From Octopus sinensis (taxonomy: Eukaryota), in NCBI RefSeq assembly GCF_006345805.1, contig NC_043012.1, positions 3,472,001-3,536,000 of the forward strand: a DNA stretch of 64,000 bases, written 5' to 3'. The notes beneath the pieces are model-generated. The model saw only the letters and a program-made list of their open reading frames with translations, was not told the DNA's origin and searched no databases. Made by a program: the position numbers and the translations under genes. Shown here piece by piece: positions 14,301 through 44,206 of the stretch (the stretch's first letter is position 1; the number at the start of each line of letters is the position of its first letter).

Positions 14301-15539
14301 ACTATAACTTATTACTGAAAGCTTTCATACCAAGTATATGGTATTCTTTGGGGGAAGGGGTGGCGAACCTTGAACTGCTGCAAAAATGTAAACAGTCTAC
14401 TGGTGCAAGATAAAATCATTTTATGTGAAGGTTAGCAGCAGCTCAGAATTGAAATACTTAAAAAAAAAAAATTGAAAAAAAGCATTACTAAAAATAAATA
14501 CATATAATAAATTAGAGATATCACAGGACAGTAAAATAGAAAAGGTTTAATAAATTAGCATTGCGTATGATTTCTCCTGTTAATCAAATATTCACAGGAT
14601 ACAATATTTCATCAACAAAATTGCCCTTAAAAACAATTTGACAAGGCAATGCTTTTCAGCTATTGTGTAGAAGCATCTTAAACTAATTTAACCAACAATC
14701 TCATTAGTAACAATTTTAGTGGCAGAGCCATTGTGCATAACAATTAGAGGCAGAAGCCTTCACACAGAAAAGATGTTACATGTAAATTTATGAATGATAA
14801 TATTAAATGACCTTAGTTTACATATCTTTCATACATTTTTGTAATTTCTTTACCATATATGGAATTTTATTGAGTCTACACTCAAAATATAGTTGTTTCA
14901 ATTAAAATAATAATAATCTACCAGCAAGCAGGGTAGTAGAAAGAGGTAACAATATTGGTTTAAAATTTTGGCACAAGGCCAGCAATTTTGGAGGAGGGGC
15001 TAAGTCGATTACATCGACTCCCAATACTCAACTGGTACTTATTTTATCGACCCCGAAAGGATGAAAGGCAAAGTTGACCCTGGTGAAATTTGGATTCCGA
15101 ATGTAAAGCTGGACAAAATGCTGTTAAGCATTCTGCCTGGTGTGTGATTCTACCAGCTTGCCACCTTGATAGAGGCAAAAATATTAAAGTGAGATTAAAT
15201 AGGTGATGAGCTACACATTTACATACTTTAAATAGTGAATATCACTATTAAGAATATTTTCATTAAAAAACAAAAAAGAAAAAAAAAGGAAAAAAAAAGC
15301 ACAAATCCCCAATGAAAGGGTATCAGAAATTTTTTCTTAAATCAATTTTAAGTGAACATAAATACTTATGTATTAAAAACAGAAGAACATCTCAGAGAAA
15401 GATACTCTCACACTGAAATGATAAAATATTAAAAAGAAATTTGTTTTTAAAAATTGAAAACCCCCCACATCCCCCCAAAAAAACAAAAAACCGTAAGTGC
15501 CCTAACAGTCAACTTTTAAAAAAAATTTCACAGCCATGG

Positions 15540-15815
15540 TTAAATGGGTGAATAGGGCATGGCATCTTGCAATGTTAGGCGAAGTAATATCTGTACACAA
15601 TAAAATTTGTCGGCAATCAACTGAAGTTTTCTACCACATGTCATCCAATAAAAACTGTCGCCCAGGAGCCGGAGAATCTGTCCACAGTGGTCATATATGT
15701 TGACATCTGGACTAGATTCTGAACTACTTCCAGAATTATCTGGGTCAACAGCCATATTCAGATCAGCAGGATTAGCCATTTGGGAAGAACACACGTAGCA
15801 ATTTTCTCCAGACAT
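15540..15815 (-). CDS. Small BH3-only-like protein with two tandem BH3 motifs (79 aa from ATG 15779, or 91 aa from ATG 15815)
   Basis: CGQILRLLGDSF and CGRKLQLIADKF both fit the BH3 pattern L-x-x-hydrophobic-G/A-D-x-hydrophobic. They follow a Ser/Asp-rich, low-complexity N-terminus. A strong minus-strand acceptor TTATCCATTTCTTTATTTTTGTAG|G opens the exon at 15876. Confidence 0.7.
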   Translation of the reverse strand: MSGENCYVCSSQMANPADLNMAVDPDNSGSSSESSPDVNIYDHCGQILRLLGDSFYWMTCGRKLQLIADKFYCVQILLRLTLQDAMPYSPI

Positions 15816-16149
15816 ATATATATATATATAACTATATATATGTATTTCTTATACAATATTAGTTCAGAAGTCAATCCTACAAAAATAAAGAAATGGATAA
15901 TACTGTAGAAAGTGAAGCTCACATTTCTTGAATGATACATTGTCAAAGTCATTTCTAACATAAATAGTTTTTCTGAAATCCTCATCAAATGTGATAACTT
16001 GAAAAATTAACTAACAAGCATTCCTGAAGCTATATCAATATAACTAATGCTATGCATACATAAAATGCTGGTCCAAAACTCAACGTAGTGTGCATGCATG
16101 ACAGAGTGTAAATGATTTAAGAGGAAAATTGGGTATAAAAAGTATCAGA

Positions 16150-16650
16150 TATTGTATGCAAGGGGGAAGGTTGCACTGGTTTGGTCATGTGATGCATATG
16201 GATGAGGACAGCTGCAAAAAGAAGTGCTGAGCTCTAATAGCAGAGAGAATCTGTGGAGGGGGTAGACCCAGGAAGATGTGGGACAAAGTGGTGGGAAAGG
16301 ATCTTTAGATGCTGGGCTTCACTGAGGAAATGACAAGGGACCGGTAGTTGTAGCGTTTTGCTGTACTTGAGAAGATATGCCAAGCTAAGTAAAATTGCTT
16401 TCTTCTATACATACAGGCTTGACCTTCACAGACGCTGGTGTTACATGAAATGCACTTATGGCAGTGCAGCATAAATGCAGCACCCTCTATAAAACGGTTG
16501 GTATTAGGAAAGGCATCCAGCCATAGAAACCATGCCACAACAGACAATTACAATCTGGACAGCAACCCAGGTGGTCAGCTCCATGTTAAACCATCCAACC
16601 TGTGCCAGCATGGAAACTGGACGTTAAATGAGGATGATGGTGTAACTAAC
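16150..16650 (+). mobile_element. RTE-clade LINE 3' fragment (degenerate)
   Basis: Translates as RLHWFGHVMHMDED...*...GRPRKMW, the RTE ORF2 C-terminus, followed by the family C tail and GATGATG. Confidence 0.75.
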
Positions 16651-19600
16651 TGATGTTTCTACATTTAAAAAGCACCAAAAATGAGTGCGGTGTTATCCGT
16701 ACAACTTCAAAATAAGCAACAGGATATCCAGAGGTGATGCAGTACGACTGTTTCACAGCGGTGGTGCTCCAGCATGGCCGCGGCCTTCGGGCTAAAACAT
16801 TTTTAAGGATATATACAGAGAGAGAGTGGGGAGCAGAGCTTTTCTTTAAAAAATGCTATATTGAAGACATCATATTTGAGTTTGTGGATGTGTGAGGAGT
16901 CTGCTTCCCAATTACAGGGTTCCAGGCTCAATCCCACAGTGTGGCACCTTGGGCAAGTGTCTTCTACAATAGTCTCAAGCCGACCAAAGCCTTGTGAGTG
17001 GATTTGGTAAACAGAAACTGAAAAGAAGGTCGTGTACATATATATATATATATGTATGTGTGGTGTATATGTGTCAGTGTTTGTTCCCACTGCCACTTGA
17101 CAATTGGTGTTGGTGTGTTTATGTACCCGCAGCTTAGTGGTTCAGTAAATGACACCAATAAAATAAGTACCAGACTTAAAACAAAAATCTGGTGTCAATT
17201 CGTTCAACTAAAAAAAAAAGGGAGAAAAAGTTCTTCAAGGCAGTGCCCCAGCATGGCCACAGTCATAAGCCTAATATTAGAAACATAAGTTAACATAAAA
17301 TTCTGACAGAAGATTTTAATGTAGACCACTCTAAAACATGAAGTTTGTATATTAAGACCAAGAGTGTTTTCAAGCTAAAAAAATGTAAACTCTTTAGCTT
17401 AAAAATTAGATTCTAGAGAGAAAAAAATTTTATATATTCATTTTTATTTACCAAATAAACTTTTCTTCCAGATTTTCTGAACAGAATTTTCCTTTGTTTT
17501 GAAAGTGTATCAAAATCTGTAAATAAAATAAAGACATATAAGAAATTATAGGACATTAATTTTGAAATACCGTGTTATTTTACTTATGGAAGAAGATAAG
17601 AATCTGTTGTTATTTGAACCAAATCCCACTCTAGTCTTGATTCTTAATTATGTTAGGGTTCAAGATTTGGAGGAAGGGAGTTCATGAGACTGGTATCATT
17701 GTCCCAGAAGGCAAAGTCAACACTGAGATTTGAACTTAGAATACAAAAATGTAAAGACTGCAACTAGATATCACAAGTGTATCATTGTTACTTGCTCTAT
17801 CAAACCTGCAGACAAAAGATGAAGCCAACTGTAGCAGGCTTTGAGTTGATGATGTAGAACAGAGGTTGACGACACATGGCCCACATGTAACCATTGAGAT
17901 TTTCTCTATGGGACGCAGACCTTTTCTAAACATGTTTAAAATCTAATGCATTTGTGGGTTGTTGAAGGCTATTCAGCGTGTCCTTTGTTGCACATACATA
18001 TTACCAGTGATGACAATGGGAGGGAGATACAAGGGGACATTTTTATATGTAAGATTATGTAATATATATGTGGACTATGGGCAAATATGACCCCCACTGC
18101 TCCATCTAAGTGTAGCATTACAAGGATGAGAAGTTGTTGATCCCGGATGTAGATAGAAGTACAATGCTAAATACTGCAATACATTTCGTATGTTCTGCTC
18201 AGATGCATCAAACACTTCAAATTAAGTATTTTTAAAATGCAGTGCCAATGAGATTATTGTTCAGTATGAACATTTGTAAGTTGATACCTCTAAAGAAAAT
18301 GCACAAGGAAGCCTCTGGGTCACTCAACCTGCTAGAATTTGTAGTCAAATCTCTCTCAAATCATACCAGAATATCTAGAGTTGTGAACCTAGGGAGAAGT
18401 GGGAATTCAAGAGGAATACAGTTCAGAGGAAAAGAGGACTGAGTAAAGTGCTAGTGAGTTAGAGATCTCAAATATGATGAGAGGAGGGGAAAAGGAGAAA
18501 CTGGAGCATCACTTATACAGCTGGCTAGTTCACAGGAGGTCAGCAGCTGTGGTTGTTTGTATGAGGGACACAAACAATACATTCCATCTGTGGGGCAGCA
18601 GTTGTTATCAGAGTGGTCTCAACAGTATTTAGGAAACAATGCATTGGAGTACAAACATATTTAGATTAGAATTCAGCCTGGAGACTCGTGGGATCCCTGA
18701 GCATGTCCTTCCTTTAAGATGGCACTGGTTATGTGTTAGTGAGGGACTCATTTTCAGTGTATTTTAATGTAAAATGTTTGAGTGTGAAACAGATGCACCT
18801 GAGCGAAGGATGAGAGCTGTAGTCCCTGCGTGCAGGTTGCAAATAGCTTTGTAGTACAACACAAACTGATCAGAGAGGTGGTCTTTTTCTGGATCTGAAC
18901 AATGTTGTCTCTGCTTGTTGATACATTCACCACTGTTTCTTAAGAACTATATTTCAGGAATTTTTAAAACAAGTGTCATTGACGAAAAATAATTTTATAA
19001 TATCTGTGCTGTTATGACATTCATGCATTTCCAAAACAACTTTGTGGGGTAAATGAGAAACAATGAACTGAGAATTTACTACATACCACAGTACCATATA
19101 CATAAAATGTGAGCTAACAAGGGGCTTATTGAACGGTTAAAAATAGCAACCATTGTTAATCGGTATTAAGTGAAAAGAATTCTGCAAAGGAATGCATCAG
19201 CTAAGCTTTGGATTTTCATTAGAAGGTTGGATAAAATGCAATTTTTTTTTTACAGCCCTTTACCTTGAGAGTTCAAATACCATTGAACCAAGTTTTGTTT
19301 TCCGGTGTCGTTAAAATAAAATTCTATTCAACTAAGTATTGGGGATCAATTTAATATTCTTGTAAGGTAGAGTATCCTAGATGTGAATGAATTATAATAG
19401 AAAACAAGACAAGGATTGTCATAAAAGACGAGAAAAAAAGTCAAAAGAGAATATAGGGTGTTACTTCTTCGTATAGACTTACGAAGCCGGCAACACGACG
19501 ACGACCTAGAGGATTATGTCTCACTAATTCCAATAACTACTATAGAGAGATATGAAAATAGCGCGCGGCTGGTGGCTAGACTGGGTCCAGAAAAGGGACT

Positions 19601-19820
19601 AGTTAACATGGTCAAGAGCTAGGATTGAGAAACAGCATCTATGTAATCACTCGACCTGCTAAAAATTGCAACCAAATTTCGCCTAAATCAAACTCCATCA
19701 CATTAAAATAAAGACTGGTACACATTAGATAGAATAATCTTAAAGACCACCACATCCAAAGTAAACGAGGTGGCCATCACTGGAATACCTTTAGTTAAAT
19801 AAAACTATGTATATATATAT

Positions 19821-19862
<42 letters not shown>

Positions 19863-20388
19863 TGGCAATCTTACGGAAAGATCAAAAATAAAAGATGTGA
19901 AAGTGAATCTATCGAGGAAAAACCCAGCCATGTTGAGGAATGTCAAGTGCGCGAAGACAATACAAAGTATAAATTGACAATCAGGCAAAACAAATTTTAA
20001 TTCCCAATAGTAATCGTTCGGTTTAGGTCGATAATTCGATCATTCTTTTAAGAAGACATATGTCAATGTAAGAAAAATAACAACTCCAAGTTACGGTAGA
20101 CACGGAAATAGATTTTTGAAAAAGACTGATTAAAACCCATACAACTCCAAAAATAAATTAAATATTTTCTTCTTAGTAAACATAGTTATACTTGAAAGAG
20201 CTACAAGTTAATACTGAAATACTTAGAATTAGAAAGAACAATAAAAATTAAAACACTTAAAAATATATAATGACTAAACATACCTGGACAGGTGGTAGCT
20301 TGTCAAAAAAAATCAGAAATAAATTAAAACCGATATTGGATATTGGAAAAAAGGAAATTATAAACAAAAAAAGAGTAAATCAACTTAC

Positions 20389-20790
20389 AGGAGCTGTTAC
20401 TGTGTTGTGTGTCAACAGGATCCGTTAAGAGGAAGACGTATAAAGCTTTCCGAACGACAAGATGTTACACACGAGACGACTTTCTTGGAAGACATCGAAG
20501 AATAACAAGAAACGTGATGTAAAAAAATAAATAAATTATGAAGCAGAAAAGAAAAAATATCAAGAACGATAACTCGTGACGGCATCACGTGATAAAGAAT
20601 GCGTATGTATGTATGTATATATGTCATACATACATGTGTGTGTGTGTGTGAGCAGGTGTATCTATGTATTATATGTATATTTCAATACACCTACTCGCAC
20701 TATATGTACAATACTTATACCCGCACCCATTTTTAATGTTTCACGTTGAATGCCAGCATTCATTCACGTGTGACGTGACGTATTAATATT
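20389..20790 (-). promoter_or_regulatory. Candidate promoter and non-coding first exon of the BH3-only-like gene
   Basis: Minus-strand donor GTAAGT at 20388-20383, a local CpG-rich patch, CACGTG at 20586 and 20765, and tandem TGACGT at 20771 and 20776. The link to the 15876 acceptor is inferred. Confidence 0.4.
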
Positions 20791-20947
20791 CTTTGGTCTT
20801 TTTGTCTGATAGCTTATGAGGCTATTTTTACAGTGAAATAGTTAATATCCTTGATTTGTGAGGAGAAAAAATTAAAGTTTCAAGTAGGTCAGCTTGGCAA
20901 AGAAATATTGGAAAGATTTTTTTAAAGCGATATTCTTAGCTTTACTT

Positions 20948-21071
20948 CTAATCTATCTATCAGTCTATCTATCTACCTACCTACCTGTCTATCTATCTAT
21001 CTATCTATCTACCTACCTACCTGTCTATCTACCTATCTGTCTATCTATCTATCTGTCTATCTATCTATCTG

Positions 21072-21136
<65 letters not shown>

Positions 21137-21212
21137 ATTTCTATCAACCTATCTGTCTGTCTATCTATCCATCTATCTACCTATCTATCTGACTGTCTAT
21201 CTATCTATCATT
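20948..21212 (+). repeat. (TCTA)n/(CCTA)n tetranucleotide microsatellite
   Basis: Seen directly. It explains the spurious ORF 20894..21241. Confidence 0.95.
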
Positions 21213-22220
21213 ATATATTATATATATATATTACAACGTAGAATCACAAAGTAAGTTACTCCAAGCTTCAAATAAACCTAAATTCATATTCGACTGAATC
21301 CAATCACCACAACCACTGAATACATAACCTTCAAACATAAGTTTGACAGGGTTTCAGTGCAACCACATGTAAAGGAGTTGTTAAGATCTGGCTGTCTGAG
21401 GATTTTAAAATCAGTCATCCTATCTGGCTATTCAAGTAGGCCATTAGGCAAAGCTTATAGTTACAGTCAATATGAACTTCATAACAAATTTGACTCTTAG
21501 TATTGATCTTCCCATGAGAAAATACTCTGTTGTTATTTTTAAATTTCTTTAAAATAGCAACCTAAAATTGATTTTTAGAGATGAATATACGCCGTAAGAA
21601 GTTTGCTTCCCAATCACACGGTACTGGGTTCAGTTCTACTGCATGGCACCTTGGGCAAGTGTCTTCTATTATAACCTCAAGCTGTCCAAAGTCTTGTGAG
21701 TGGATTTGGTAGGCAGAAACTGAACAGAAGCCTATCATATATATATGTATATATGTGTGTGTGTACTGGGGTTGATTTATTCAACTAAAATTATTTCAAG
21801 GCAATGTTGCTGACTAATGACTGAAAGAAGTAAAAAAGATAAAAGATACATATGCACATACATTATTTAAGACATCTGATCATGTGAAACCATAAATTTG
21901 CATCTGGAAAGTTCCTTACCAGGTTACATGCTTGGGCATGCAGCAGGTCTTCCCTCTTAATGTCACCAATGTTATCCAAAATAAAAAGCGCAGAGGATGA
22001 AATAGCTTGGATACTAGCGTTGTTGAAGTAAAACTCAGAATATAAAGATCTGGTACAAATTCTACCAAGTATTTAGTCTGATGTTTTAACAATTCTAACA
22101 ATCCAGTATCCCATACTAGTATCTTATGTCATGAACTTGGGAAGTATGAACGGGAAGGCTGATTTCAGTGAGATTTGAACAAAGAACATAAAGAACTCAA
22201 ACAATATTGGGTGTTACTTT

Positions 22221-22612
22221 AAGGTAGCGAGCTGGCAGAAACGTTAGCACGCCGGGCAAAATGCTTAGCGGTATTTCGTCTGCGTTACGTTGTGAGTTCA
22301 AATTCCGCCGAGGTCGACTTTGCCTTTCATCCTTTCGGGGTCGATAAATTAAGTACCAGTTATGCACTGGGGTCGATGTAATCGACTTAATACCTATGTC
22401 TGTCCTTGTTTGTCCCCTCTGTGTTTAGCCCCTTGTGGGTAGTAAAGAAATAGGTATTTTGTCTGTCTTTACGTTCTGAGTTCAAATTCTGCCGTGGTAA
22501 ACTTTGCCTTTTATCCTTTCAGGGTCGATAAATTAAGCACTAGTTGCATATTGGGGTCAATCTAATCGACTGGCCCCCTCCCCCAAAATTTTGGGCCTTG
22601 TGTCTAGAGTAG
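22221..22612 (+). mobile_element. SINE family B copy plus an adjacent partial second copy
   Basis: Head AAGGTAGCGAGCTGGCAGAAACGTTAGC. The GAGTTCAAATTC...GTCGATAAATTAAG block is repeated in tandem. Confidence 0.8.
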
Positions 22613-24734
22613 AAAATAATATTCCGTGCTACTTTAACATGCAGTCTACTGGAATATCTGTAGTTTATGCTGTGAAACAACCTGATCTGGGTTAGGGTTA
22701 GGAGTTAGGGTATAGTTAGATGACACACTAAAGTACAAATGGTCGGGTAGACCACATGCTAAAGTGTAAATGGCCATGTAGACTGCATACTTAAGTGACA
22801 ACCCGTATTGCAAGGCATTCTACTGCCCTGGCTGTTGTTTTATCAGCCTTGGGAAGGATGAGAACCAAATCTGACCTCAGTGGGGTTTGAACATAAAACA
22901 AGGTAAGTCAGAACAAATACATCAAGGCTTAGTCAATCAATCACATGGTTCTGCTAATCCATTGCCTGATGCTTAGATAATCAGATAGATACATAGACAA
23001 ATACATAGATAGTCAGATATGTAGATAATTGTACATTTATAGATAGTACTATATCTTATAGACAGTTCTATGTAGATATCTAATAGATAGTACTATACAG
23101 ATAGTTACAATAGCCATGCTGGGTCACTGCCTTGAAGGGTTTAGGTGAACAAATTGGGCACAATAATTTTTGAGTACTAGTATTTATTCTGTTCACATTT
23201 TTGCTGAACTATTAATTTACAGGGACATAAACAAACATGCATGACACTGGATCTAAATGTTTTGTTTACCCATGATACTGTTTCTGCATTCCCACTACAA
23301 CATACACACACACACACACACATCTTGGGCTTCCATGCAGTTTCCATCTGCCAAATTCATTCATAAGGTGTTGGTTGGGCTGGTGTAGAAGACGCTTACT
23401 CAAGGTGCCATGTACTGGGACTGAATCCCAAACCACAGGCTTGCAAAGCCACACCCTCAAAATTTTAGATGCATAACAAGCCTTTAAAATAAAAAAAAAA
23501 TCAGAAATAACCTTCAAATGTTATCTAAGCTTCATTACGTACAAACTTATCTGCATCAAGGTTCCTTCATAATAAAATATATTGGTTATCCATTCTGAAT
23601 ATCATAGACATTACTCACTGGTCAAAGTATCACAGTGATAAAACAATTTCACATTCTGCATTATCTGATCAATTTCTTCATATAGATTTCTAAAATTAAA
23701 AATGTTTCATATGAATGTATGTATGAATGAATGTGTGTGTGTATGAATGAATGTGTGTGTGTGTGAGTGTGAGTGTGTGTTTGTGGGTGTGTTCCAATCA
23801 TTTAGACTACAGTCATGCTGAGACAACAGCTCGAAGAATTCTAATTGAATGCATCAATCACACTTTGTATTAGTTTTTTAATCCTGGTGCTTATTCTATT
23901 GGTCTCTTTTGCCAAACTGCAAAGTTACAGAGGCATAATCACACCAACAGTGGTTGTCAAACAGTCATGTGGAACAAACACAGAGACACATACACACACA
24001 CACATGTATGTATTTGTGTGTGTGTGCGTGTGTATATATATATAATTTCAGTCTACCAAATCCATTCATAAGGCTTTTGTTGGCCTGAGCCATAGTAGAA
24101 AGTACTTACTCAAGGTGTCACACAGTGGGACTGAACCTGCTACCAAGTGGTTGGGAAGCAAACTTCTTATCACACAGCCATGCCTGCACCTGTGTGTGTG
24201 TATGTGTGTGTATTTTGTTACTGACCCATTGAAGCTTAATTTCAAATACGACATTCTATTCACAATTTTTAATCTCATTAATTTCAAGTTTGAAAGAATA
24301 ATTTGAAATATTACATTCTATTCATAAAAACTTAGACAATGAAATCTTTTTTTTTTTGTCATAAAGTGTTCTTGTGTTCTTTATGTGTTCTAACAAGACA
24401 TCCACATTCAATTAGATATGAAGAAGATTAGCTTTTGGTAAAATTAGTTTCTGTGCTTCTGTCACTAATAATTAATACATAAATACACACACACACACTC
24501 ACATATACAGGGTGTGTAAAGTACTTGAGGACATACAATGTTTTGGGGTCATTGCTGCAATTTTGCCAACTCTGTATAATCTTTGTTTCAGAAAATAATA
24601 ATGGCAGACCCTCAGCTTACTCAAGAAATGAAGAGGCATGCTGTTATTGTGGTTATAAAGGGTTAGGGTCTTGGTCACCAGTCATTGCCTCCATGAAGTT
24701 CAAAGTATGAAGATCATGCTTCACCACCTTGTTC

Positions 24735-25240
24735 CATGTCTTCTTGGGTCTACTATAGGTTCCTTCCACAGTTAGAAATCAGCACTTCTTTATACAACTG
24801 TCCTCGTCCATACACATCACATGACCATATCAGTGCAGTTGTTTCTCTTGCACACCACATCCAATTCCTCTTATGCCTAACTTTTCTCCCAAGATGCTTA
24901 CACTCTGTCGAACAAGTACACTGACATTGCACATCCAGGGAAGCATACTCTTCGTTTCTCTCAAGCCTACGCATGTCCTCAGCTGTCATAACCTATGTTT
25001 CACTGCCATACAGCATAGCTGTTCGCACACAGGCATCAAACAATTTGTGTTTCACTATGAGAGAGAGGCCTTTTGTTGCCAGCAGTGGTAGGAGCTCTCT
25101 GATCTTTGCCCAGCCTAAACTTATTCTCACAGCTATGCACTTGGAGCATCCACCTCCACTACTAACTTGGTCACCTAGATAATGGAAGCTATCTACTACC
25201 TCTAGCTTGCACCCCTTGCAGTTGAAGGAGTCTATTTTCT
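24735..25240 (-). mobile_element. RTE-clade LINE ORF2 fragment (degenerate)
   Basis: The reverse strand resembles the 16.15-kb fragment (…CTGATATGGTCATGTGATGTGTATGGACGAGGACAG…). Confidence 0.6.
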
Positions 25241-25315
25241 ACACATTTTCAGCTTTTATTGTACCTGTGCTCCTTCCACATACAAAGCTAGTTTCCCTCT
25301 GTTTCTGTCTCTCTG

Positions 25316-25354
<39 letters not shown>

Positions 25355-25917
25355 TAGAAGGTTTGGAGGTGATGTACAGGTATATATTAGAAAAAATAAG
25401 GTACTCAGAAATCTGGATGGTTATACATTTACAGATTTTTATCAAAATGTCACATGATTTTCTAAATCATAAATTAGCGCTTGCATCTACTCTAGTAGAA
25501 TCTTCAGACTTGAATTTGTTTGAGAGTGTTCGTCTCTTTTTATAGTATCATTGAGTGTGTAGGGGGGGAGAGAGATATAGGATTGTAAAAGAGGGTGAGG
25601 AATGGGGAGAAAGTGAGAGAGAGAGTCTATGCCTCTGTGTGTGTGTGCCATTTGTGTGACACTAGTATCTGCCATGACTGTGATTTTACTCAGCTTGATG
25701 GGTCTTCTTCTCAAGTATGATATAATGCCAAAAGTCATTACAAAAGGTTTCTTTAAGTTTCCATCTCCTAAATCCATTCATACTTTATCCTTGGATAGCC
25801 CAAGGATAAAGTAGATGACACTTGCCCAAGGTGCCACGCAGTGGGACTGAGCCCAGAATCATGTGGTTCATAAGCAAGCTACTTACCACAGATCCACGCC
25901 AGTGTCTAGACATACAT

Positions 25918-25949
<32 letters not shown>

Positions 25950-27678
25950 GCATGTATGTATGTATGTATGTATGTATTAAAGGAAGTAAAAAATAAAACA
26001 ATATATATAGGCATACGAGTGACTGTGTGGCATTTTTCAAATGATAGATGGTGAGGAAGGTTTTTATGAGAAAAAGAAATGTTTGAAAATTTATGATTTT
26101 TTCACACCCCACTTCTCCCACCTCCAGACTGATTTTGGTGAATTGATTGCTCTAATTACTTAAAAACGATGGGAAAAGCCTCTTTGTTAAAAAAAAAAAA
26201 TTTGAAAATATTTTCAGACTAAAAGGTGTATGATTTATGGGAGATTTAGCTGTTGTTTCTAACACGTCCCACGACCACCTGGTACCTTCCATGTTTCTTT
26301 GTCACTCTGACAAGTATTGATGTTTCTCAACATTTTTCTTCCCATAAACACATTTTATGGAATGATAATGCAGAAGTTTTTAGTCCAAGAGTAGTCCGTT
26401 TGTAGGGATTTAAGCAACCATTAAAAAATTTTGTAATTTAAATTTTTAACCCCCACCAACTGAGTCTGTGAGAGTGTGTATGTATGCATGTAGGAAAAAA
26501 CATATTCACTAACAGAAAAATATGCTATTAAAATAAAATGTCTTCAACATACTTTTTAAAAATCACTGTGGATAAATCCCAGCAATGACTCTTCACTGTT
26601 TTGAAATTATAGACACAAAGGATGTGGGGTTGAAAAAGCCATAAATTTTCCATTTATTTTTAATAGAATACTTTTCTGTTAGTAAATATATATTTATTTT
26701 CCTTAAAGACACACAAACATATACACGCGGACTCGCTTGGTGCCGGGGAGGGGGAGAGAAACGCGGAAGGTATCACGTCGTCGTGGGATGTGCTACAAAC
26801 AACAGCCAGGCTTCCTTTCACTTTTTCGTCTGGAAGTATTTTCCAAATTTGTTTTTAACGAAAAGACTTTCCCCATCGTTTTAAAGTGCGGAGTGCAAAA
26901 AAAAAAAAAGACCAAATTCGGCCCCAAGGTGGGAGCAGGGGAGTGAGAGGCCAGGGGTGATAGCAGGGGAGTGGGGAGAACAAGGGAGTGGAATTGAAAA
27001 AAAAACCCCAGATTTTCAAAATGTTTTTTTCTTAAAATGCTTTCCTCTATCATTTCCGAGGGCGAAGCGTAAAAAAAAAAAATAAATTGGAAAAATCCCC
27101 GCCGATCATTTTGAAGCGCTGGTAAAAAAAAAAATTGAACCATTTTTCGCGGAGAGTAAATTAATTTAATTTTTTTTTTTCAATTTTAACTTCGTTTAAT
27201 TTCTTTCATACAACTGTTACTGCATACTTAATCACATAAGTATTCTACATTTGGTCGCACACCATAAGGGTCAACGGAACTTATTAAAGTTAACCAAAAC
27301 GCTCGCAGCGTTAACAGTGGACGATGGCGGGACTTGGGCGTTGGAACAGCCAAACACACCCATGGGCATTTGAAAATTCCTTTTCAAAACGGAGAAAGTC
27401 CAACATATGTTGGTGACATATTCCAGACTTCCGTCACGGGAACTTACTCTCATTTACAAATAATGACGGGGTTAGCAAAAAAAAAAAAAAAACGGAAAAT
27501 TCTTTTTCACTTATAGTTTTGGGGTTGTCTGCATTAACTTGCAGAAAATAATTGTTTTGTTTACAAAATAAATTTATAAGTGCGCATGCGTGTGTGTGTG
27601 TGTGTATACAAATAAAAGTATGACTATATAGTGTATATGTTATGTGTGTGTGTGTGTAAAAAACAAACAAACCAAAAC

Positions 27679-27730
27679 AGCCAATCAGAAAGGCGGACTC
27701 TTATATAAAGAGAGGAAGCTTTCATTAATC
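27679..27730 (+). promoter_or_regulatory. Core promoter of the Bcl-2-family gene (CCAAT, TATA, Inr-like)
   Basis: AGCCAATCAG at about 27679, TATATAAAG at about 27702 and TCATT at about 27722, roughly 95 nt before ATG 27819. Confidence 0.6.
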
Positions 27731-27818
27731 GCTTTTAAAGTCGCAAGCGTTTACATTGAGTAAGCTCTTATCGTTTCCCTCAAAAAGTTTAACAGGCGCT
27801 CAGTTAATATCCCTCAAG

Positions 27819-28334
27819 ATGGTCTCTGTTCTGACGAATATCTTTTGTAGTATTAACTCCTCGCCTGTTATGGACCCCTTTCAATCGGTAATGCACATGG
27901 ATAATGAAGAAAATCTGAAATTTTGTAGAAAAGAAGTGCACAAAATTGTCAAAGACATGGTGTTAAACTTCGATAAAGGTCACTTTATCTCGAAACCCGA
28001 GTCCGACATTTGTGCAGGCATGAGAAAATCAGTATTAGAAATTTACAACACTTACAGAGATGCTCTGCATAAAAACGTTGCCCAATTGTTAGGCGAAGTT
28101 GCTGATGAATTTACAATACAAAAAGCCTATCGTTGCGTTGTGGACACCATCCTGGAGGATCGGAAAAATCTGCATTGGCGGCGTATCTCGATGGTTTTCA
28201 TTATGTTGGCCCTTTTGGCGGAAGATCAGCGAGCAAAAAAGCATGACCTTTCCTGGGAACATTATAACCAAATCTTGATAAAAATCTTTAGAGACCACAA
28301 GATCGACATCTGGATAAATGATAACGGCGGATGG
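27819..28334 (+). CDS. Bcl-2-family protein (Mcl-1/A1-like), coding exon 1: BH4-like, BH3-like, BH1 and start of BH2
   Basis: 172 codons from ATG 27819. BH1-like VVDTILEDRKNLHWRRISMVF and BH2 IDIWINDNGGW are present. The donor TGG|GTGAGG falls exactly after GGW, the conserved Bcl-2-family intron position (phase 0). Confidence 0.85.
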
Positions 28335-31300
28335 GTGAGGTTTAATTTATTATATATAATTATTTTTAAAATTCATATATTTTTTTGTACGTGAATAAAA
28401 TATAGAGATCTGATTTAGTAAACAAAATACATAGCTTTGAGAATTGTATAGGCCTTTATTTATTTTTTTTACGGAGAGAAATTCTGCTTTAAGCTCGCCA
28501 TATAATCTCTCATAACTATCTTGGTAGTATTTTACGAATTTGTATTCTTAATACAGAAAACTACACGACTGTAAAAAATTTTTGTGTCACTTTTTCGAAT
28601 TTAAAAAAGAAATCACAGTTTGAAATATAAACAAGTCCTAAATTTTGGCTTAAATCCCAACAAATTAAATGTGTTAATGGGGAAGAAAGATATCAAAAAA
28701 TCTGAATACGCCAGACTGACAAACAAACGGGGGCAGTTGTGAGATGTGCTATGAGGGGGTCATATATGGCATGCTTAAATAGAATTCTGCTCCCATGTTT
28801 TAAAAGAAAATAAACACATTTAATTTATTGAATAAAAATACTTTCCAGACACAATCATGAAAGTATAAACGAAATTGGTGTTGTTTATCTTTAAATATTA
28901 TAGTTGAAATTAAAAAGCAATTAGCAAGTCTATCTGTAAAAAAAGTGTTTTACAATAGCATTATATAATTTATTCTTTAACACTTTTTCTTACAAAACGG
29001 ACCTAATTATTTAATATATTTTAATTGACGGCATAACGTACCAAGTGCGAAAAATATTGTAGGTCTTTATTCTCATATGAAATCTCTCACTCACCCAAAC
29101 TTTTGCTTCTTTATGCTGTACCTAATATACAAACAGTTTATTATTATACAAATAGTATTGAAGTACGTTAGGGGATGATATTGCACTAATTAATGTCATT
29201 ATGGCGCCTCGCTTTATGTTCTGGAGTTCGAACCCTACTCAGTTCGATTTCGCATTCCCGACAAAATAATTGCCAATTAACAATAAACTATATATTCATT
29301 TCCACACAACCCCCCCTTTTTAAAAAAAATTTTGTTCTTGCCTCAACGTAGTCGTTCGACCTGCTTGAAATAGCAGTGAAATCTCTTAATACCCTGTTAC
29401 TTTATATGACCGTTAATTACTGTTGCCGATACCACTCGGCTGTCGACCTTGCTTGATAGTGTCTGACTATATCCATATCAAGCAATCTAAATTCTTTTAA
29501 ATAATTAACGGAAAAAAATTTTTAAATTCACAATACAAATCAAACTATAATTAGTTATCTCTCCTCTTTTTATATCGGGTGGTGGTTGTTTAGTTCCAAG
29601 TCATCCTATTAGTTCAGTCCTATGATTAGACTTTCCAGACAAAGGCCACCCCGTCATATATTTATACTATTTTTAATTTGTTGTATAGGATTTAGATGAT
29701 CCGATGCGTCTATTATGATATTTTATTTTTAAGAGAATACGACGTTAATTCCATGGAGATTTGGCTGCAATTTGTTTTCTAACCAAACCAGTTTTATTGT
29801 CGGTATATTTAATAGCACTTTAGAATTATAACCCGACAATAAAGCTGTTTCAGCCTTCCTTTTTATCTTTATTTTCCCCCCACTATATCTAGGACTACGT
29901 TACACTGGTTTGAGGGACATTTGGCTTCGGTTTTTAACAAGTCAAACGACAATATAAGCTGTTCGCTCGTCTTTATGTATAAAGTTAAAAAGTTTGGGCG
30001 AAATCATTTCCTTGATATATATTTCACCAATTTTCCCTCTCTCTCTCTCTTTGCTTATTGTTGCTAAGCACACACACTCATCATTTTCCTTGACTTCGAT
30101 ACTTTGATTATCGATTGTTGAGTATAAAAGTCAGTTCAGTCGCAGTCACACAAAGGACATTGATTATGTGTGACGTGGAGCCAACCGAGCACATCAAATG
30201 TGGGGTAGCTTTTTGCAAGGCCTTTGTTGTTGCAGCTTAGCTCCGGTTTTGAGCATCGATCGTGCAAACTTACGATCAAAGCCGCTCCAGCTGTGAATAT
30301 CTATCTTAATCTATCCAAGATCATATTACCAAACTTATTCTCTTTTTTTTTAAGAGGCTGAGAGGTGTACTGAGTGAGATTTTGCTGCTATTTCTAGCGG
30401 ATCATTGCTGCCACGTAGAAGTTCTCCCACTTTCTCATTAGTTCGTGGGATGGGCGGATTCGTTATCAAATTAAAACCAGACTTGCAGCCTACCAAACCG
30501 GATTTAGTCTCCAATTTTATTCTGGGTTGCAAAAAGAGAGTAAAATTACTCTACAATCCAAATTCTCTTAATTGCCGTTATTACTTTTCTTTACATTTCG
30601 ACCGACCTAATTTATCGAATTATTTATTTAAAACCAAGCATAAATAGCAAAGGAGTTGTGTTCGCTGATTTTTTTTTCCTTCCTTGTCTCAGTTTTAAAC
30701 ACTCATTTTCGACGATAGTAAATTAAGTAAAATTCTATTTCTAAGTATAGGTCGATGGTTAGTACTTGTCACTTGGAATTTTCAGTATTTCAGAGTAAAG
30801 ACCACTTCTGGAAATTTACGGAGGAGAGGTGTTGATTGCTCTGTAAATTTTCCAAAAGAAGCCATCTAAACCTTATTTCTCATAACTTTCATTGTTTTAG
30901 CTTTAAAACACACACTCACACGAGGCAATACTTAACGAAAACTATACTACTCTCTAGATAAATATATAAATATTTTATCCATAAATCCGACAATAAATAT
31001 TGTTTCGCCCATGTATATATATAAACACACACACACACACTGTAACTAACACAAGAGTAGAAATTCATATTTGTGAATTTTCGTTTCCTTTCTTAGCTCT
31101 TAGCATTTTTACATCCTGTTTTGAGTAGATCTAGATCTAATTACATCTGTCACTTAGTATTTCAAACATTTTTTAAAATTGCTACAATTTCGCCTTGAAA
31201 TCTTGCCGAATTGACTTTATTTTTGAAACGGAAATTGTCGGTTACCAAGAGAACCTAAAATTTAATCATTACTCTGAGCATTTAATGGTCGGCGATCTTT

Positions 31301-32932
31301 CGTAGACCTTTCGTTCTCTTTCGCTCTCATTACTTCAAAAGTTCCCGTCATTACTTCAAAAGTTCCCGCAAGCCCATATGTAAAAAAAAAAAAAAATTTT
31401 TACGGAAATCGACGGAAAGGTCTACTTGAGACGAAAGATTGCCTAATGGTCTAATGCTGGAATTTAAGCCAAAAATTTAAACTAATTTTTTAAAATTTTA
31501 TAAAATTTCGAAAACTTAAACAGATTTCATAGTCGTATGAATTATCGTGTGTAGAACAGAAATTCACCAGAAATTTCTGAAAATTAAAATAATAATAAAG
31601 TTATGAAGAGGTTTTATATGTCGTGTATAAAGCAGAATTGCCTTCTTGTCGATGGTGGTGGCGATGTATCTGCCAGCAGTCACGTATTCTCTTGAGTGTG
31701 TTAACGTCATACTTTCCGACCTCTCCTAATTCTTAGCCGAAATGAATAGTCTGTTAACATTTGCGAATTTTTGCATCATCGTATTACTAGAGGCTTGGTC
31801 CGAAACGTTTGCATTCTCATCTACCCACGCACGGCGTATCAGTTTATCTTCTTGCGCAGCAGACGAATCGCGTCTCTCTTCAGGTTGGCTGACATATATT
31901 CATTCGTTACTTGGGCCAAACTACGCAAAAAAACAAACCAGCAAGGGCGTCTCTGTGGTTGCCCGACCTGCTAGACTCAACAGCCAAATACCTTACCGTC
32001 TAACAAAGAAAAGACACGGTACATAATCGAGAAGACATAGCGCTCAAGATAATATACGAAATGGCCATATGTGGAACGTTTTTCACTGTAGTGTATAATA
32101 GATCCTAAAGCCACTATTTTCCTGTGCTCTGAAAATGTCTCATTCCAGATGTTTTACCTTCTGTTGCAGTCATTAGGCTGCAGCTATGTTAGGGAACCGC
32201 CTTGAAGGGTTTAGTTGAACAAATCGATCCCAGTAAATTTTCTTTTCTAAACCTGGTACTTAACCATGGTTCTTTTTTCACTACTAAGTTGTGAGGAACA
32301 TAAACAAACTAACACCAGTTACCAAGTGGTAGCAGTGGTCTCACGCGTGTGCACGACAAGCCTTCAATTTCCGTCTACCAAATCCACTCAAAAGGTTTCG
32401 GTTGGCCAAGTGCTATAGCATACTTGTCAAAAGCCGTCACACAATGCGACTAAAACCAGAGCTTAAACTATTTCTTTTTTTAAATTCAGAAAATCACTAG
32501 TCACACATAGCTGAAACAGGACATTTTCAGACTTGAAAATAACCAGTCTGTCCTTTGCACAGACTAGGATTTGCATTCATATGTGCATACACTTGAGAGC
32601 ACTTAAAAGTGCAAAAAATGCATTTTTCTGAAAGTTTCAACTGTGACCATTCTATTTAAAAAGTGTTACAAATATTATCTCTTCATCGTTGTTTTTTCTT
32701 AGTATAAATCCACCTTATTTTTGGACCTTGTTAAAAAATTTTCTACAACAGCTTCGTTTTTAAAAATTTTCATTAGATTATTTTCAAAATGTTTACTTCT
32801 TTTGTAGTTTTGCTTGCTGATGATGTGTGTATAGATCTATACTGCTATTGCCCCATGTTGTTCTATTCCTTGTCAGTACAGAAATTTTGTTGTTAAATTC
32901 CCTCTGTTACTATCTGGTTTTTAAATTTAGTA

Positions 32933-33146
32933 CCTATTTATTACCCACAAGGGGCTAAACAAGGACAGACATAGGTATTAAGTAGATTACATCGACCCCA
33001 GTGCGTAACTGGTACTTAATTTATCGACCCCGAAAGGATGAAAGGCAAAGTCGACCTCGACGGAATTTGAACTCACAACGTAACGCAGACGAAATACCGC
33101 TAAGCATTTCGCCCGGCATGCTAACGTTTCTGCCAGCTCGCCGCCT
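32933..33146 (-). mobile_element. SINE family B copy in the Bcl-2-like intron
   Basis: Near-identical to the 11143-11371 copy. Confidence 0.8.
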
Positions 33147-33190
33147 TTTAAATTTAATACCACTGTGCAGCTCATTGGACAAATGTCTTC

Positions 33191-33650
33191 TACAGGGTGC
33201 GAGGGGTATTTGAGGACATTTTGTTTTTAGTTCATTTTAGTATTTAATGTAGCTTTTTTTTTTTTTTTTTGATAAACCTTTCAATTTATCATGCTAACTC
33301 AAGAAATGAATATACATGCAAACCACAGTGTTGCAAGATCATTTGTACATAAATTTTGGTTGGAATTGGAGGCATGTGATGATAATGTTTCATTCTGTAT
33401 CAAAGAGAAAAAAATATTCACAACGCTCAAACACTAAAAGGACACCAGAATTTATACAACATTCAAAACATTATTGATGAAAACCCCAGATCAATGAGGT
33501 CCATTGGTAAAGAATTTGGGGTATCAGAGTGGACTATCAGAACTGTGGTACATTGTAACATTTTGATACAAGTCCTTTGTAATGAGAAAAGGCCAATTGT
33601 ATGAAACGATGTCCGTTCTTTGGAATGCTGCCAATAAAGATCATTATTAA
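33191..33650 (+). mobile_element. Tc1/mariner-superfamily transposon 5' remnant
   Basis: Starts TACAGGGTG. Carries a frameshifted HTH-like ...RTPEFI...IIDENPRSMRSIGKEFGVSEWTIRTVVH. A related 5' fragment lies at about 24505-24700. Confidence 0.6.
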
Positions 33651-33662
33651 CTCCAACAATTC

Positions 33663-33941
33663 TCAGTAATCATTTCGTTGTTGTTTCTGCATACAAAGGT
33701 GGTATTCAAGAATGGTAGAGCAGACATCATCAGTCACTTCATTGCTACTAGTTATGTAAATCTTGAGTTTCGTCCAAGTTTCTCTAAATCTTTTGAAAAA
33801 TGCCATGTCTGGACCAGAAGTTGCTCCCATCAGTGAGTCAAAACAGCTCCTAAAAACTAACTCAAAATTGTGATGATGGCAAGGGAAGTACAACAGGTTG
33901 CGATTGAACAACTTTTCTAGATTTGTACTGGCATCATTCAC
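33663..33941 (-). pseudogene. DDE DNA-transposase fragment with a CxxH-type motif
   Basis: ORF track: LLYFPCHHHNFELVF...SGPDMAFFKRFRETW resembles invertebrate DDE transposases. The superfamily is not assignable by eye. Confidence 0.5.
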
Positions 33942-35006
33942 TTGACCTGTGTTGCTTGCTGTCGTATCTGAGCAAAGTGCCTGAATTTTGTCAGTTATAC
34001 CTCATTTCTTCACTGCTTGGTAAACAGCCATGGCTTGCTGTTCTCTTGAAGATGTTAGAATTTCAGGGACTCCCAACAATTGCTCCTTGCCATGGAAAGT
34101 TTGACCCTCTGGAAAATTGGAAGAAGTCTTCGATGTTTCGAGCAAGCCTATACACCTCTATAGAAATTTCAGATATTAACAATTAAAGGAACAATTAAAC
34201 GTTTGTTAGGAATTGATATATTATTGCTTAGCCCCAGGGCAACCCTGACAGTACAGACCTATGGTCAAAGGCTTCCATTTATGACCAACCATCCTTTGAG
34301 GGCTGTCTCTGACTACATTATCTAATGTTCTTTAAATAAAAAAAGAATGATGTGATTTAAGGGATATTTGGTTACTATTTCTAGCAAAATAGCAGCTTTC
34401 AAAAGATTCACTCTTTGAAGTGACTGGAACAATTTTATGTATTTAAAATATATTCATAAAATGTGGCTGCAAGATACAAAGCTTTCACTTTTCTTTTTTC
34501 TCAATTCTTGCTTGGCTAATTTTGCATTCTTGTTAGCTTTAGTGGTTGTCAGGGAGAATTTCCTGCTTTTGTGGGGTATCATTCACAGAACACACTATTG
34601 TCATGCAGTGTCCCTAAAATAAAAGTGAAAAACTGCTGACTGCCTTAACCTTTGAACATTTAAACAGGCCATATCAAGCCAAAATATTCTACCAGTTTTA
34701 TATCTATATCAGCCAGATCTAGCCTCTCACACCTGCCCTACAATGTCATTCTAAAAATAGTCACGTTGAAATCTCAAAGCTATGAGGTAAGGTTTGCTTA
34801 ATTCAAAACATTGTGAACAGATAAGTATTATATTTGGCAGAGTAATCTGAATGTTAAAGGTTTATGTTACCCATCTCAACCTTAAGCTTCTTTTGTGTGG
34901 AAAAGATAGATATACCTTTCTTAAGAGCACTCTAGTTTCCAAAATTGCATATTTTTCTATTTTTTGTATTCTATTTTCTTATATGTTTTTATTTTCCTTA
35001 ATGCAG

Positions 35007-35111
35007 GATGGCTTCCTGGAACATATTCATATGAAACACAAAAGTAAATTGGAAGAAATTATCTGGCTGAGTACAATTGGACTCTGGTCTTTGTCAGTTT
35101 CTGGTTTGTGA
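35007..35111 (+). CDS. Bcl-2-family protein, coding exon 2: end of BH2 and hydrophobic C-terminal tail
   Basis: Acceptor TTTTATTTTCCTTAATGCAG|GAT. In phase 0 it reads DGFLEHIHMKHKSKLEEIIWLSTIGLWSLSVSGL*, giving GGW|DGFLEH, like Mcl-1 GWDGFVEF. The spliced protein would be 206 aa. A candidate AATAAA lies at 37141. Confidence 0.82.
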   Translation, partial: DGFLEHIHMKHKSKLEEIIWLSTIGLWSLSVSGL

Positions 35112-42400: not shown

Positions 42401-43237
42401 TACTGATTTTCGGATTAATCAATATAAAATTTGGTTAATACTAGTTTTGTGAAGGAATAAAATTTCTTATAATTCTATACATCTACATGCAGCTCGCCTA
42501 CATTTTTTTCTTTACATATAGATTTTATGAAGTGATGAAGTTACATCGACTCCTTAAAATGCAAATATGTAAATATCAAAGAAAAGTTGAAAACATTCGT
42601 ACTTACACATCCATATTAACAAGCCATGGGTTATAAAGAAGTTTATTTGAGGAGAGAAAAGCTTATATGTAATTATGAAATAGTCTTCATTTTCAGAAGA
42701 ATGTTTTAAAAAATAAATGAATCCCCACTCACCTGCGATATGATTTGATGATGTGTTCTGCTGGAGATTGAGATTAAATCTTGAAAGATCGAAGCAGGAA
42801 TGCAGGAGCAGATAACTAATGAACCACTGAAAGCCTTTGTTAAAACATACCCCCTCCCTCCCTCTCTCGCATTCCATATTTCACACGTCAGTAGTTGTCG
42901 AGCTCACTATAAATTTGAATACAGGGGTTAGATATATTTATAGTAGAAATATTTTCTGATTTTAATTAAAACGATGTCAGGCCCAACAACAGCTCGCACG
43001 CGAGATTACAAGCGTTTCTGGCACTCGCGTTCCCTTCACAAATTTACACTTGCTAATAACCTGGTTCGATTGACCGAAATAACGTAGGTCTAAAAAGAAA
43101 GTAGGCATAACTCCTTTCTTTTGATTTAACCGTAATCAATTAACAGAAATTTGGAGCTTTCATAAATTATTTACTTCATGTTTGATAAACTATTTACCGC
43201 ATATTCTACAACATATTTTATAAATTGATTGTATCAA

Positions 43238-44206
<969 letters not shown>

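Follow-up and report, generated by a model that had tools for sequence, protein, structure and literature searches.

A small cephalopod gene with tandem BH3-type motifs, a candidate BH3-only gene, lies head-to-head with a divergent Bcl-2-family gene in Octopus sinensis

We analyzed a 64,000-nucleotide stretch of Octopus sinensis DNA (NCBI RefSeq assembly GCF_006345805.1, contig NC_043012.1, positions 3,472,001 to 3,536,000 of the forward strand), which is called the window in the following. Here, a small open reading frame (ORF) of 91 amino acids on the minus strand and a Bcl-2-like gene on the plus strand are arranged head-to-head, with 12.0 kilobases (kb) between their start codons. These positions bear out the description of the two genes as adjacent and divergent in the first-pass annotation of this DNA, in which they were further interpreted as a possible linked killer/guardian module of apoptosis. 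Positions 15540 and 35111 are the outermost stop-codon bases of the small ORF and of the Bcl-2-like gene, respectively, and the latter gene extends past 35111 since its 3' untranslated region (UTR) reaches at least to 37157. The window is nuclear DNA, AT-rich (34% GC) and with many microsatellites and dispersed repeats, and the O. vulgaris chromosome OX597828.1 matches it with 96-98% identity across 20 kb. The product of the plus-strand gene is that of O. sinensis LOC115220385 (206 amino acids, 100% identity), and O. vulgaris carries an exact copy of the 91-amino acid ORF. For the small gene, the following features were defined, in which BH3 stands for Bcl-2 homology 3:

15540-15815, minus strand: coding sequence of the small gene, 91 amino acids plus stop codon, defined by the ORF, its homologues and purifying selection.
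15639-15686, minus strand: BH3-type unit 1, residues 44-59, CGQILRLLGDSFYWMT, with the core match at 15651-15674.
15591-15638, minus strand: BH3-type unit 2, residues 60-75, CGRKLQLIADKFYCVQ, with the core match at 15603-15626.
15877-15878, minus strand: splice acceptor AG, with tttatttttgtag/GATTGACTTCTGAAC at the junction, the same in O. sinensis, O. vulgaris and O. bimaculoides.
14866-15539, minus strand: probable 3' UTR, inferred to end at the first AATAAA (14866-14871) after the stop codon.

In the direction from the N to the C terminus, the small protein has a CxxC motif, an acidic and serine-rich low-complexity stretch, the two BH3-type units in tandem, and a short tail. When all six reading frames of the 64 kb were searched with the BH3 core pattern L[KARQ]x[IVAL][GA]Dx[LIMFV], only two matches were obtained and both of them are located within the 91-amino acid ORF. 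First-order Markov simulations gave an expectation of 0.34 core matches per 64 kb, and a tandem pair in an open frame was seen in none of 300 runs. In unit 1, the four hydrophobic positions h1 to h4 are occupied by C44, L48, L51, and F55, with G52 and D53 between the latter two; in unit 2, the corresponding residues are C60, L64, I67, and F71, with A68 and D69. The two 16-residue units evidently represent an internal duplication, as judged from the pattern CG..L....D.FY, which is common to both of them. The hydrophobic moments of units 1 and 2 (1.64 and 1.18) can be compared with those of human BH3 sequences, which range from 0.94 to 1.72, and motif 1 resembles the cores of Bim and Noxa. As to other domains, the small protein matched no Pfam family and no solved relative at expectation values (E) of up to 10. 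The BH3 peptides alone gave no match among the sequences of solved structures, but these queries are too short for HMMER.

The O. bimaculoides orthologue (A0A0L8HHP9) shares 95% identity with the 91-residue protein, and an exhaustive phmmer and profile search recovered three more cephalopod homologues (P0007, P0013, P0014) with 40-47% identity, in which both motifs are kept. The DNA flanking these three genes is not alignable to Octopus. No homologue was found outside cephalopods among the 5.8 billion and 1.8 billion proteins searched, and a scan of JGI metagenomes added no further one. The BH3 core (h1-x3-Leu-x2-h3-small-Asp-x-h4) is present twice and is kept in all five cephalopod sequences. 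The h2 leucine, the aspartate, and the h4 phenylalanine are invariant in both motifs. In motif 1, C44 and the h3 leucine are also invariant and the small residue is Gly or Ala; in motif 2, Ala68 is invariant and h3 is either Ile or Leu. The exposed positions of the motifs vary among the five sequences, and h1 to h4, the small residue, and the aspartate are invariant or conservatively exchanged. The cysteines C6 and C9 of the CxxC motif (15789-15800) are, like C44 at h1 of motif 1, the same in all five sequences. This is also the case for the linker FYWMT, which, like these cysteines, is not a BH3 feature.

Comparison of O. sinensis with O. bimaculoides indicated that the two halves of the small gene differ in their substitution pattern. 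Codons 43-91 show six synonymous changes and none that is non-synonymous, a result with a neutral probability of about 1e-4, and in codons 1-42 one synonymous and five non-synonymous changes were counted. The non-coding DNA around the gene is 91-93% identical between the two species when gaps are excluded. Because the changes in the C-terminal half are exclusively synonymous against this background, this part of the protein is held by selection at the protein level and not by general conservation. Among distant species, the double motif (36 codons) gave 10 synonymous versus 2 non-synonymous changes in one comparison and 17 versus 4 in another, and the ratio of non-synonymous to synonymous rates (dN/dS) over the motifs of the deep homologues is about 0.04.

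In one of the distant relatives, the small gene is represented by an RNA contig of about 1 kb, which was assembled in 17 or more sequencing runs. In the majority of these contigs, a non-coding 5' exon of about 70 nucleotides is spliced to the coding exon, and two of them retain the intron with a canonical ...aacag acceptor. The mRNA of this species carries an in-frame stop codon ahead of the ATG, and its 3' UTR measures at least 750 nucleotides. One contig (L011, run SRR24189498) differs from the others of the series L005-L014 in that a different 5' sequence is joined at the same acceptor, which suggests an alternative first exon or promoter of the small gene in this relative. The acceptor of the relative, as defined by comparison of the spliced with the intron-retaining transcripts, is homologous to the octopus acceptor at 15877-15878; the octopus coding exon begins at 15876, and an in-frame TAA precedes the ATG by 12 codons. 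Since the small gene of the relatives has a non-coding 5' exon, the corresponding exon and the promoter probably lie in the octopus intergenic stretch. When the exon 1 sequence of the relative was used as query, nothing meaningful was found in the window, and the conservation between the two Octopus species, with gaps separated from substitutions, showed no peak over the 91-93% background. Immediately upstream of the coding exon there is a fragment (16087-16642) with two other copies in the window, the translation of which seems to resemble the C-terminal part of a non-LTR (long terminal repeat) retrotransposon protein.

The database records of the small gene are heterogeneous. The O. vulgaris assembly lists its product and so does UniProt, where it derives from the 2015 annotation of O. 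bimaculoides, but the assembly collection has no record of a gene with the product of O. bimaculoides, and the only label given to the protein is "uncharacterized". The gene seems to be annotated inconsistently and is possibly expressed at low levels in the Octopus tissues sampled. Judging from its coding signatures, the 91-amino acid ORF is a genuine protein-coding gene.

For the neighboring Bcl-2-like gene, which lies on the plus strand, these features were defined:

27681-27709, plus strand: core promoter, with a CCAAT box at 27681-27685 and the TATA box TATATAAA at 27702-27709, assigned from sequence and conservation.
27819-28334, plus strand: coding sequence of exon 1, 172 codons, with BH4-like helix 1, a degenerate BH3, BH1 (LHWRRISMVF), and BH2 (WINDNGGW).
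28335-35006, plus strand: intron after the Trp codon of GGW, with the donor GGW/gtgag at 28335 and the acceptor ...aatgcag/GAT.
35007-35111, plus strand: coding sequence of exon 2, 34 amino acids plus stop codon, DGFLEHIHMKHKSKLEE followed by the hydrophobic tail IIWLSTIGLWSLSVSGL, a putative tail anchor.
35112-37157, plus strand: 3' UTR, minimum length by homology to the O. bimaculoides mRNA contig L002.

The assignment of this gene to the Bcl-2 family, which had been proposed in the first-pass annotation, was confirmed by several lines of evidence. The protein matched the Pfam Bcl-2 family (PF00452) over the full model (1-100) with 35.7 bits, compared with a gathering score of 31.4, and its alignment to Bcl-2 and Bcl-xL structures spans helix 1 to BH2. 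The closest solved relatives are of the Bcl-2/Bcl-xL types (E 5e-5 to 1e-3); A1 was matched with an E of 0.0048, and Mcl-1 was absent among the best 60 solved relatives. An intron after GGW and a separate tail exon are a feature of the Bcl-2 family (PMC7022251). The product of exon 2 opens with DGFLEH, followed by the hydrophobic tail, and a spliced O. bimaculoides mRNA (L002) joins exons 1 and 2 and aligns to positions 35006-35874 and 36033-37157 of the window. The overall layout with a BH4-like helix 1, a BH3 position that lacks the GD, and a C-terminal anchor is pro-survival-like. In four octopod sequences, BH1 reads HWRR instead of NWGR, so that Trp and Arg are kept and an Arg takes the place of the Gly. 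The O. sinensis and O. bimaculoides proteins differ at 29 of the 206 residues (86% amino acid identity, dN/dS 0.17), and the relatives that were found in a word-indexed search are all from octopods (at least 81% identity). By these sequence features, the Bcl-2-like gene is a genuine but divergent member of the Bcl-2 family.

The CCAAT/TATA promoter of this gene is located about 110 nucleotides 5' of its ATG. Conservation in three octopod sequences covers both boxes and the 5' UTR up to the ATG, and upstream of the promoter there is a non-conserved (TG)n repeat. The region 27207-28570, which covers promoter and exon 1, shows 87% substitution identity to O. bimaculoides versus 91-93% in the nearby non-coding DNA. 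Its third codon positions are 23% different (dS 0.37), with a transition to transversion ratio of about 1:1; 10 of 61 differences fall on CpG sites, and the observed/expected ratio of CpG is about 1.0 versus 0.48 in the intergenic DNA. Possible reasons for this raised divergence are a locally increased mutation rate, gene conversion from a paralogue, or a bias in the sequence that can be aligned. A gap-free block in the intron (33873-34101) is 93.4% identical to O. bimaculoides; it is overlapped by a 92-amino acid minus-strand ORF (33663-33941) without Pfam match and could represent either what is left of a transposase or a conserved element of the intron.

The intergenic DNA had been described in the first-pass annotation as holding only repeats and promoter-like patches. 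In line with this description, we found no Pfam-recognizable ORF between the two genes and no match in Rfam and tRNA scans of the whole window; several microsatellites are present, and 27% of the intergenic bases have another copy in the window. However, the description has to be amended since the 5' exon and the promoter of the small gene probably also lie here. A p53 response element was not detected in the window at up to two mismatches, for which 0.9 hits were expected by chance.

Outside the two genes, the window contains several repetitive elements. In its GC-rich first 2 kb, a plus-strand ORF of 321 amino acids (4-969; 48% GC versus 34% in the window) carries the core of a retroviral-type integrase (Pfam rve, E 1.7e-6, under the gathering score) and is a retrotransposon remnant. 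Short dispersed repeat families with 8-14 copies per 64 kb, which are represented at 16884-17213, 21594-21764, 22218-22623, and 23875-24213 and at further sites such as 33001-33213 and 60601-60897, give rise to recurring pseudo-peptides among the ORFs; they are probably SINE-like (short interspersed nuclear element-like) elements, without tRNA or Rfam match. A block of about 1.2 kb rich in TA/TATG microsatellites (43190-44353) leads to long spurious YIYIYI ORFs on both strands, and an (ATCT)n array of 260 nucleotides is present at 20951-21209.

The locus holds two separate real genes, one for a cephalopod-restricted small protein with tandem BH3-type motifs and the other for a divergent, tail-anchored Bcl-2-family protein with multiple BH motifs. 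On balance, we consider it somewhat probable that the former functions as a BH3-only protein. In the small protein, the first 40 residues show little conservation and are probably disordered, and residues 40-85 are predicted to form a single long amphipathic helix that bears both BH3-type motifs. An AlphaFold model of the protein alone, which is of low confidence (predicted local distance difference test, pLDDT, 54), leaves residues 1-39 unstructured and puts residues 40-85 into a helix. Such a protein would most likely act as a death ligand of the BH3-only class: the four hydrophobic residues and the invariant aspartate of one motif, or of both, would enter the groove of a Bcl-2-fold protein, and this insertion would either neutralize pro-survival members or activate effectors of the Bax/Bak type. 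The name BH3-only that had been given to the small protein appears reasonable, and we regard it as a BH3-only candidate and a credible first one for molluscs.

Several observations weigh against this interpretation. No Octopus RNA sequencing contig on record contains the 91-amino acid ORF, although the mRNA of the distant relative is common. The invariant C6, C9, and C44 suggest an additional or different chemistry, for instance metal binding, redox reactions, or lipid anchoring. Mutation of the BH1 glycine in Bcl-2 or Bcl-xL disrupts BH3 and Bax binding, and because this glycine is replaced by Arg, the groove of the octopus Bcl-2-like protein may be atypical. On a 316-kb contig of a distant cephalopod, no Bcl-2 domain was detected in the 10 kb to each side of the small gene by tblastn, by a hidden Markov model of the octopod proteins, or by precomputed Pfam matches. 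Finally, BH3 is a short linear motif for which a sequence match is a poor predictor of binding, with many false positives (PMC9171138), and because of this poor predictive power the BH3 function of the small protein stays an inferred one.

The latter point leads to the strongest of the alternatives, which we consider less likely but which has to be taken seriously: the motifs of the small protein, which itself is real, would be no more than BH3-like and would serve another purpose, such as self-association of a long helix, membrane binding, or a cysteine-dependent function, with the adjacency to a Bcl-2-family gene being coincidental. The frequency of false positives among BH3-like strings would fit this explanation, and so would the invariant CxxC at residues 6-9, C44, and the FYWMT linker, which are foreign to BH3, as well as the lack of homology to known BH3-only families past the motif. 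On the other hand, there are two full core matches with correct spacing, both of which are kept over deep divergence, motif 2 is close to the BH3 of BMF, and a Bcl-2-family gene is located next door.

That the small protein antagonizes its neighbor in a dedicated killer/guardian module, in which the linkage has been selected and the two genes are co-regulated and co-evolve, appears unlikely to us. The genes are immediate head-to-head neighbors in both O. sinensis and O. bimaculoides; in the latter species, the small ORF is located at 611-883 of contig L004 (minus strand) and the Bcl-2-like ATG at 10001 (plus strand), which corresponds to the same divergent order with a distance of 9.1 kb. The chance that the nearest neighbor is a Bcl-2-family gene, given roughly a dozen such genes, is about 1 in 1000 (an estimate and not a computed value), and the neighbor retains the BH1 arginine that normally pairs with the BH3 aspartate. 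However, with no more than about 8% divergence between the two Octopus species, a common gene order is expected by default. The microsynteny is kept within Octopus but was not recovered in the distant cephalopods: in addition to the negative result on the 316-kb contig, there is no Bcl-2 domain within 5 kb upstream of the small gene in another distant species. Since the spacing in Octopus is 9-12 kb, the 10-kb negative would be compatible with a linkage of slightly longer range.

The proposed co-regulation did not find support. The Bcl-2-like gene has its own conserved CCAAT/TATA promoter and the coding exon of the small gene is located 12 kb away from it, behind its own splice acceptor; each gene appears to have its own promoter, and nothing points to a shared bidirectional one. 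Co-evolution is likewise not reflected in the rates, which are unlike in the Octopus pair: the double motif has no amino acid change, whereas the Bcl-2-like protein is 14% diverged. The Gly to Arg exchange in BH1 also speaks against a dedicated module. An AlphaFold model of the tail-less Bcl-2-like protein fused to the small protein was all-helical but, with a pLDDT of 36 from an alignment of seven rows, unusable both for the eight-helix Bcl-2 fold and for a docking of the two proteins. Our literature search retrieved no report of a BH3-only gene adjoining a Bcl-2-family gene, which is weak evidence. Taken together, beyond the adjacency we found little that supports the hypothesis of a linked module. 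The more far-reaching version, in which the small protein represents the first true BH3-only family of molluscs and its tandem-BH3 ligand is tightly linked in octopods to a dedicated, fast-evolving Bcl-2-fold antagonist, has in our view a slightly smaller chance still.

A purely historical adjacency, in which the small gene goes back to an inverted partial duplicate of a local Bcl-2-family gene that kept only a BH3 segment and then duplicated it, so that the neighbors would be relatives and not partners, is quite improbable. It would account for the proximity without selected linkage, and the two units are indeed an internal duplication, but BLASTP of the small protein against the Bcl-2-like protein found nothing (best E 0.76) and distant cephalopods have the small gene with no Bcl-2 gene in the 10 kb around it. 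That the ORF is a pseudogene or is open in non-coding DNA by chance is hardly conceivable and was effectively ruled out: it does adjoin a transposon-like fragment and a TA repeat and appears to be missing from some annotations, but its synonymous-only changes, its deep homologues with a motif dN/dS of about 0.04, and the spliced mRNA of the relative in many runs speak against it.

In 2017, molluscs were still without an identified BH3-only protein (PMC5550854), and none is reported in two later papers: a 2024 survey of the lophotrochozoan BCL-2 family covers multi-motif members only (PMC11463336), and in a study on squid the atypical BNIP3 is the only one named (PMC9389742). The main value of this analysis lies in the small gene, a testable BH3-only candidate of molluscs with a tandem-BH3 architecture, which gives a concrete molecule for studying how mitochondrial apoptosis is triggered in cephalopods. 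The neighboring Bcl-2-family protein is the obvious first candidate for a binding partner. If the linkage were functional, it would be an unusual genomic organization for an apoptosis pathway, and a dedicated linked pair, if true, would amount to eukaryotic poison-and-antidote genes in the core apoptosis machinery.

Among the known systems, the first-pass annotation had chosen Noxa (PMAIP1) with its selectivity for Mcl-1 and A1 as frame of reference. There are similarities: the small protein is very small, has no other domain, carries BH3 in the last coding exon, and has a cysteine at h1 of motif 1 (CATQLRRFGDKL versus CGQILRLLGDSF). Mouse Noxa reportedly bears two BH3 motifs, a finding that is ascribed to Oda and coworkers and the year 2000. 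Human Noxa has 54 amino acids, with BH3 in exon 3 (PMC8875537). However, the small protein shows no homology to Noxa past the BH3 core and no recognizable C-terminal mitochondrial targeting domain, and no p53 response element was detected in the window. Since the searches returned cephalopods only, we rejected a Noxa orthologue. Selectivity of the Mcl-1/A1 type is not supported either because the Bcl-2-like neighbor, which is nearest to Bcl-2/Bcl-xL, is not Mcl-1/A1-like. This frame of reference thus finds no support.

Motif 2 is nearest to BMF. Eight of the 12 residues of its sequence CGRKLQLIADKF agree with residues 133-144 of human BMF (Q96LC9; IARKLQCIADQF, BH3 string from PMC9171138), among them RKLQ, IAD, and F. 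In contrast to BMF, none of the five small-protein sequences contains a DLC2-binding motif of the TQT type, and there is no similarity outside BH3. BMF orthologues have been reported in vertebrates only (PMC12811263), and an orthologue of BMF was rejected in view of the missing DLC2-binding motif despite the BH3 match.

The Bcl-2-like protein differs from pro-survival Bcl-2 and Bcl-xL in that similarity reaches an E of about 5e-5 at best, BH1 reads HWRR, its own BH3 is without GD, and relatives are octopod-only so far. It shares with them the Pfam domain, the BH4-like helix, a BH1-like region, BH2, the intron after GGW, and the separate tail-anchor exon.

For the small protein, C. elegans EGL-1, the schistosome BH3-only proteins, and Drosophila sayonara offer the closest parallel in kind. 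Our literature search, which is weak evidence on this point, retrieved no description of any of them with tandem BH3 motifs or beside a Bcl-2-family gene, and they are backed by binding or killing data, whereas the octopus protein is a candidate by sequence. These are likewise lineage-restricted small proteins that are recognizable by their BH3 motif alone; they came to light case by case, when the multi-BH genes of these animals had long been known (PMC7022251, PMC10107002).

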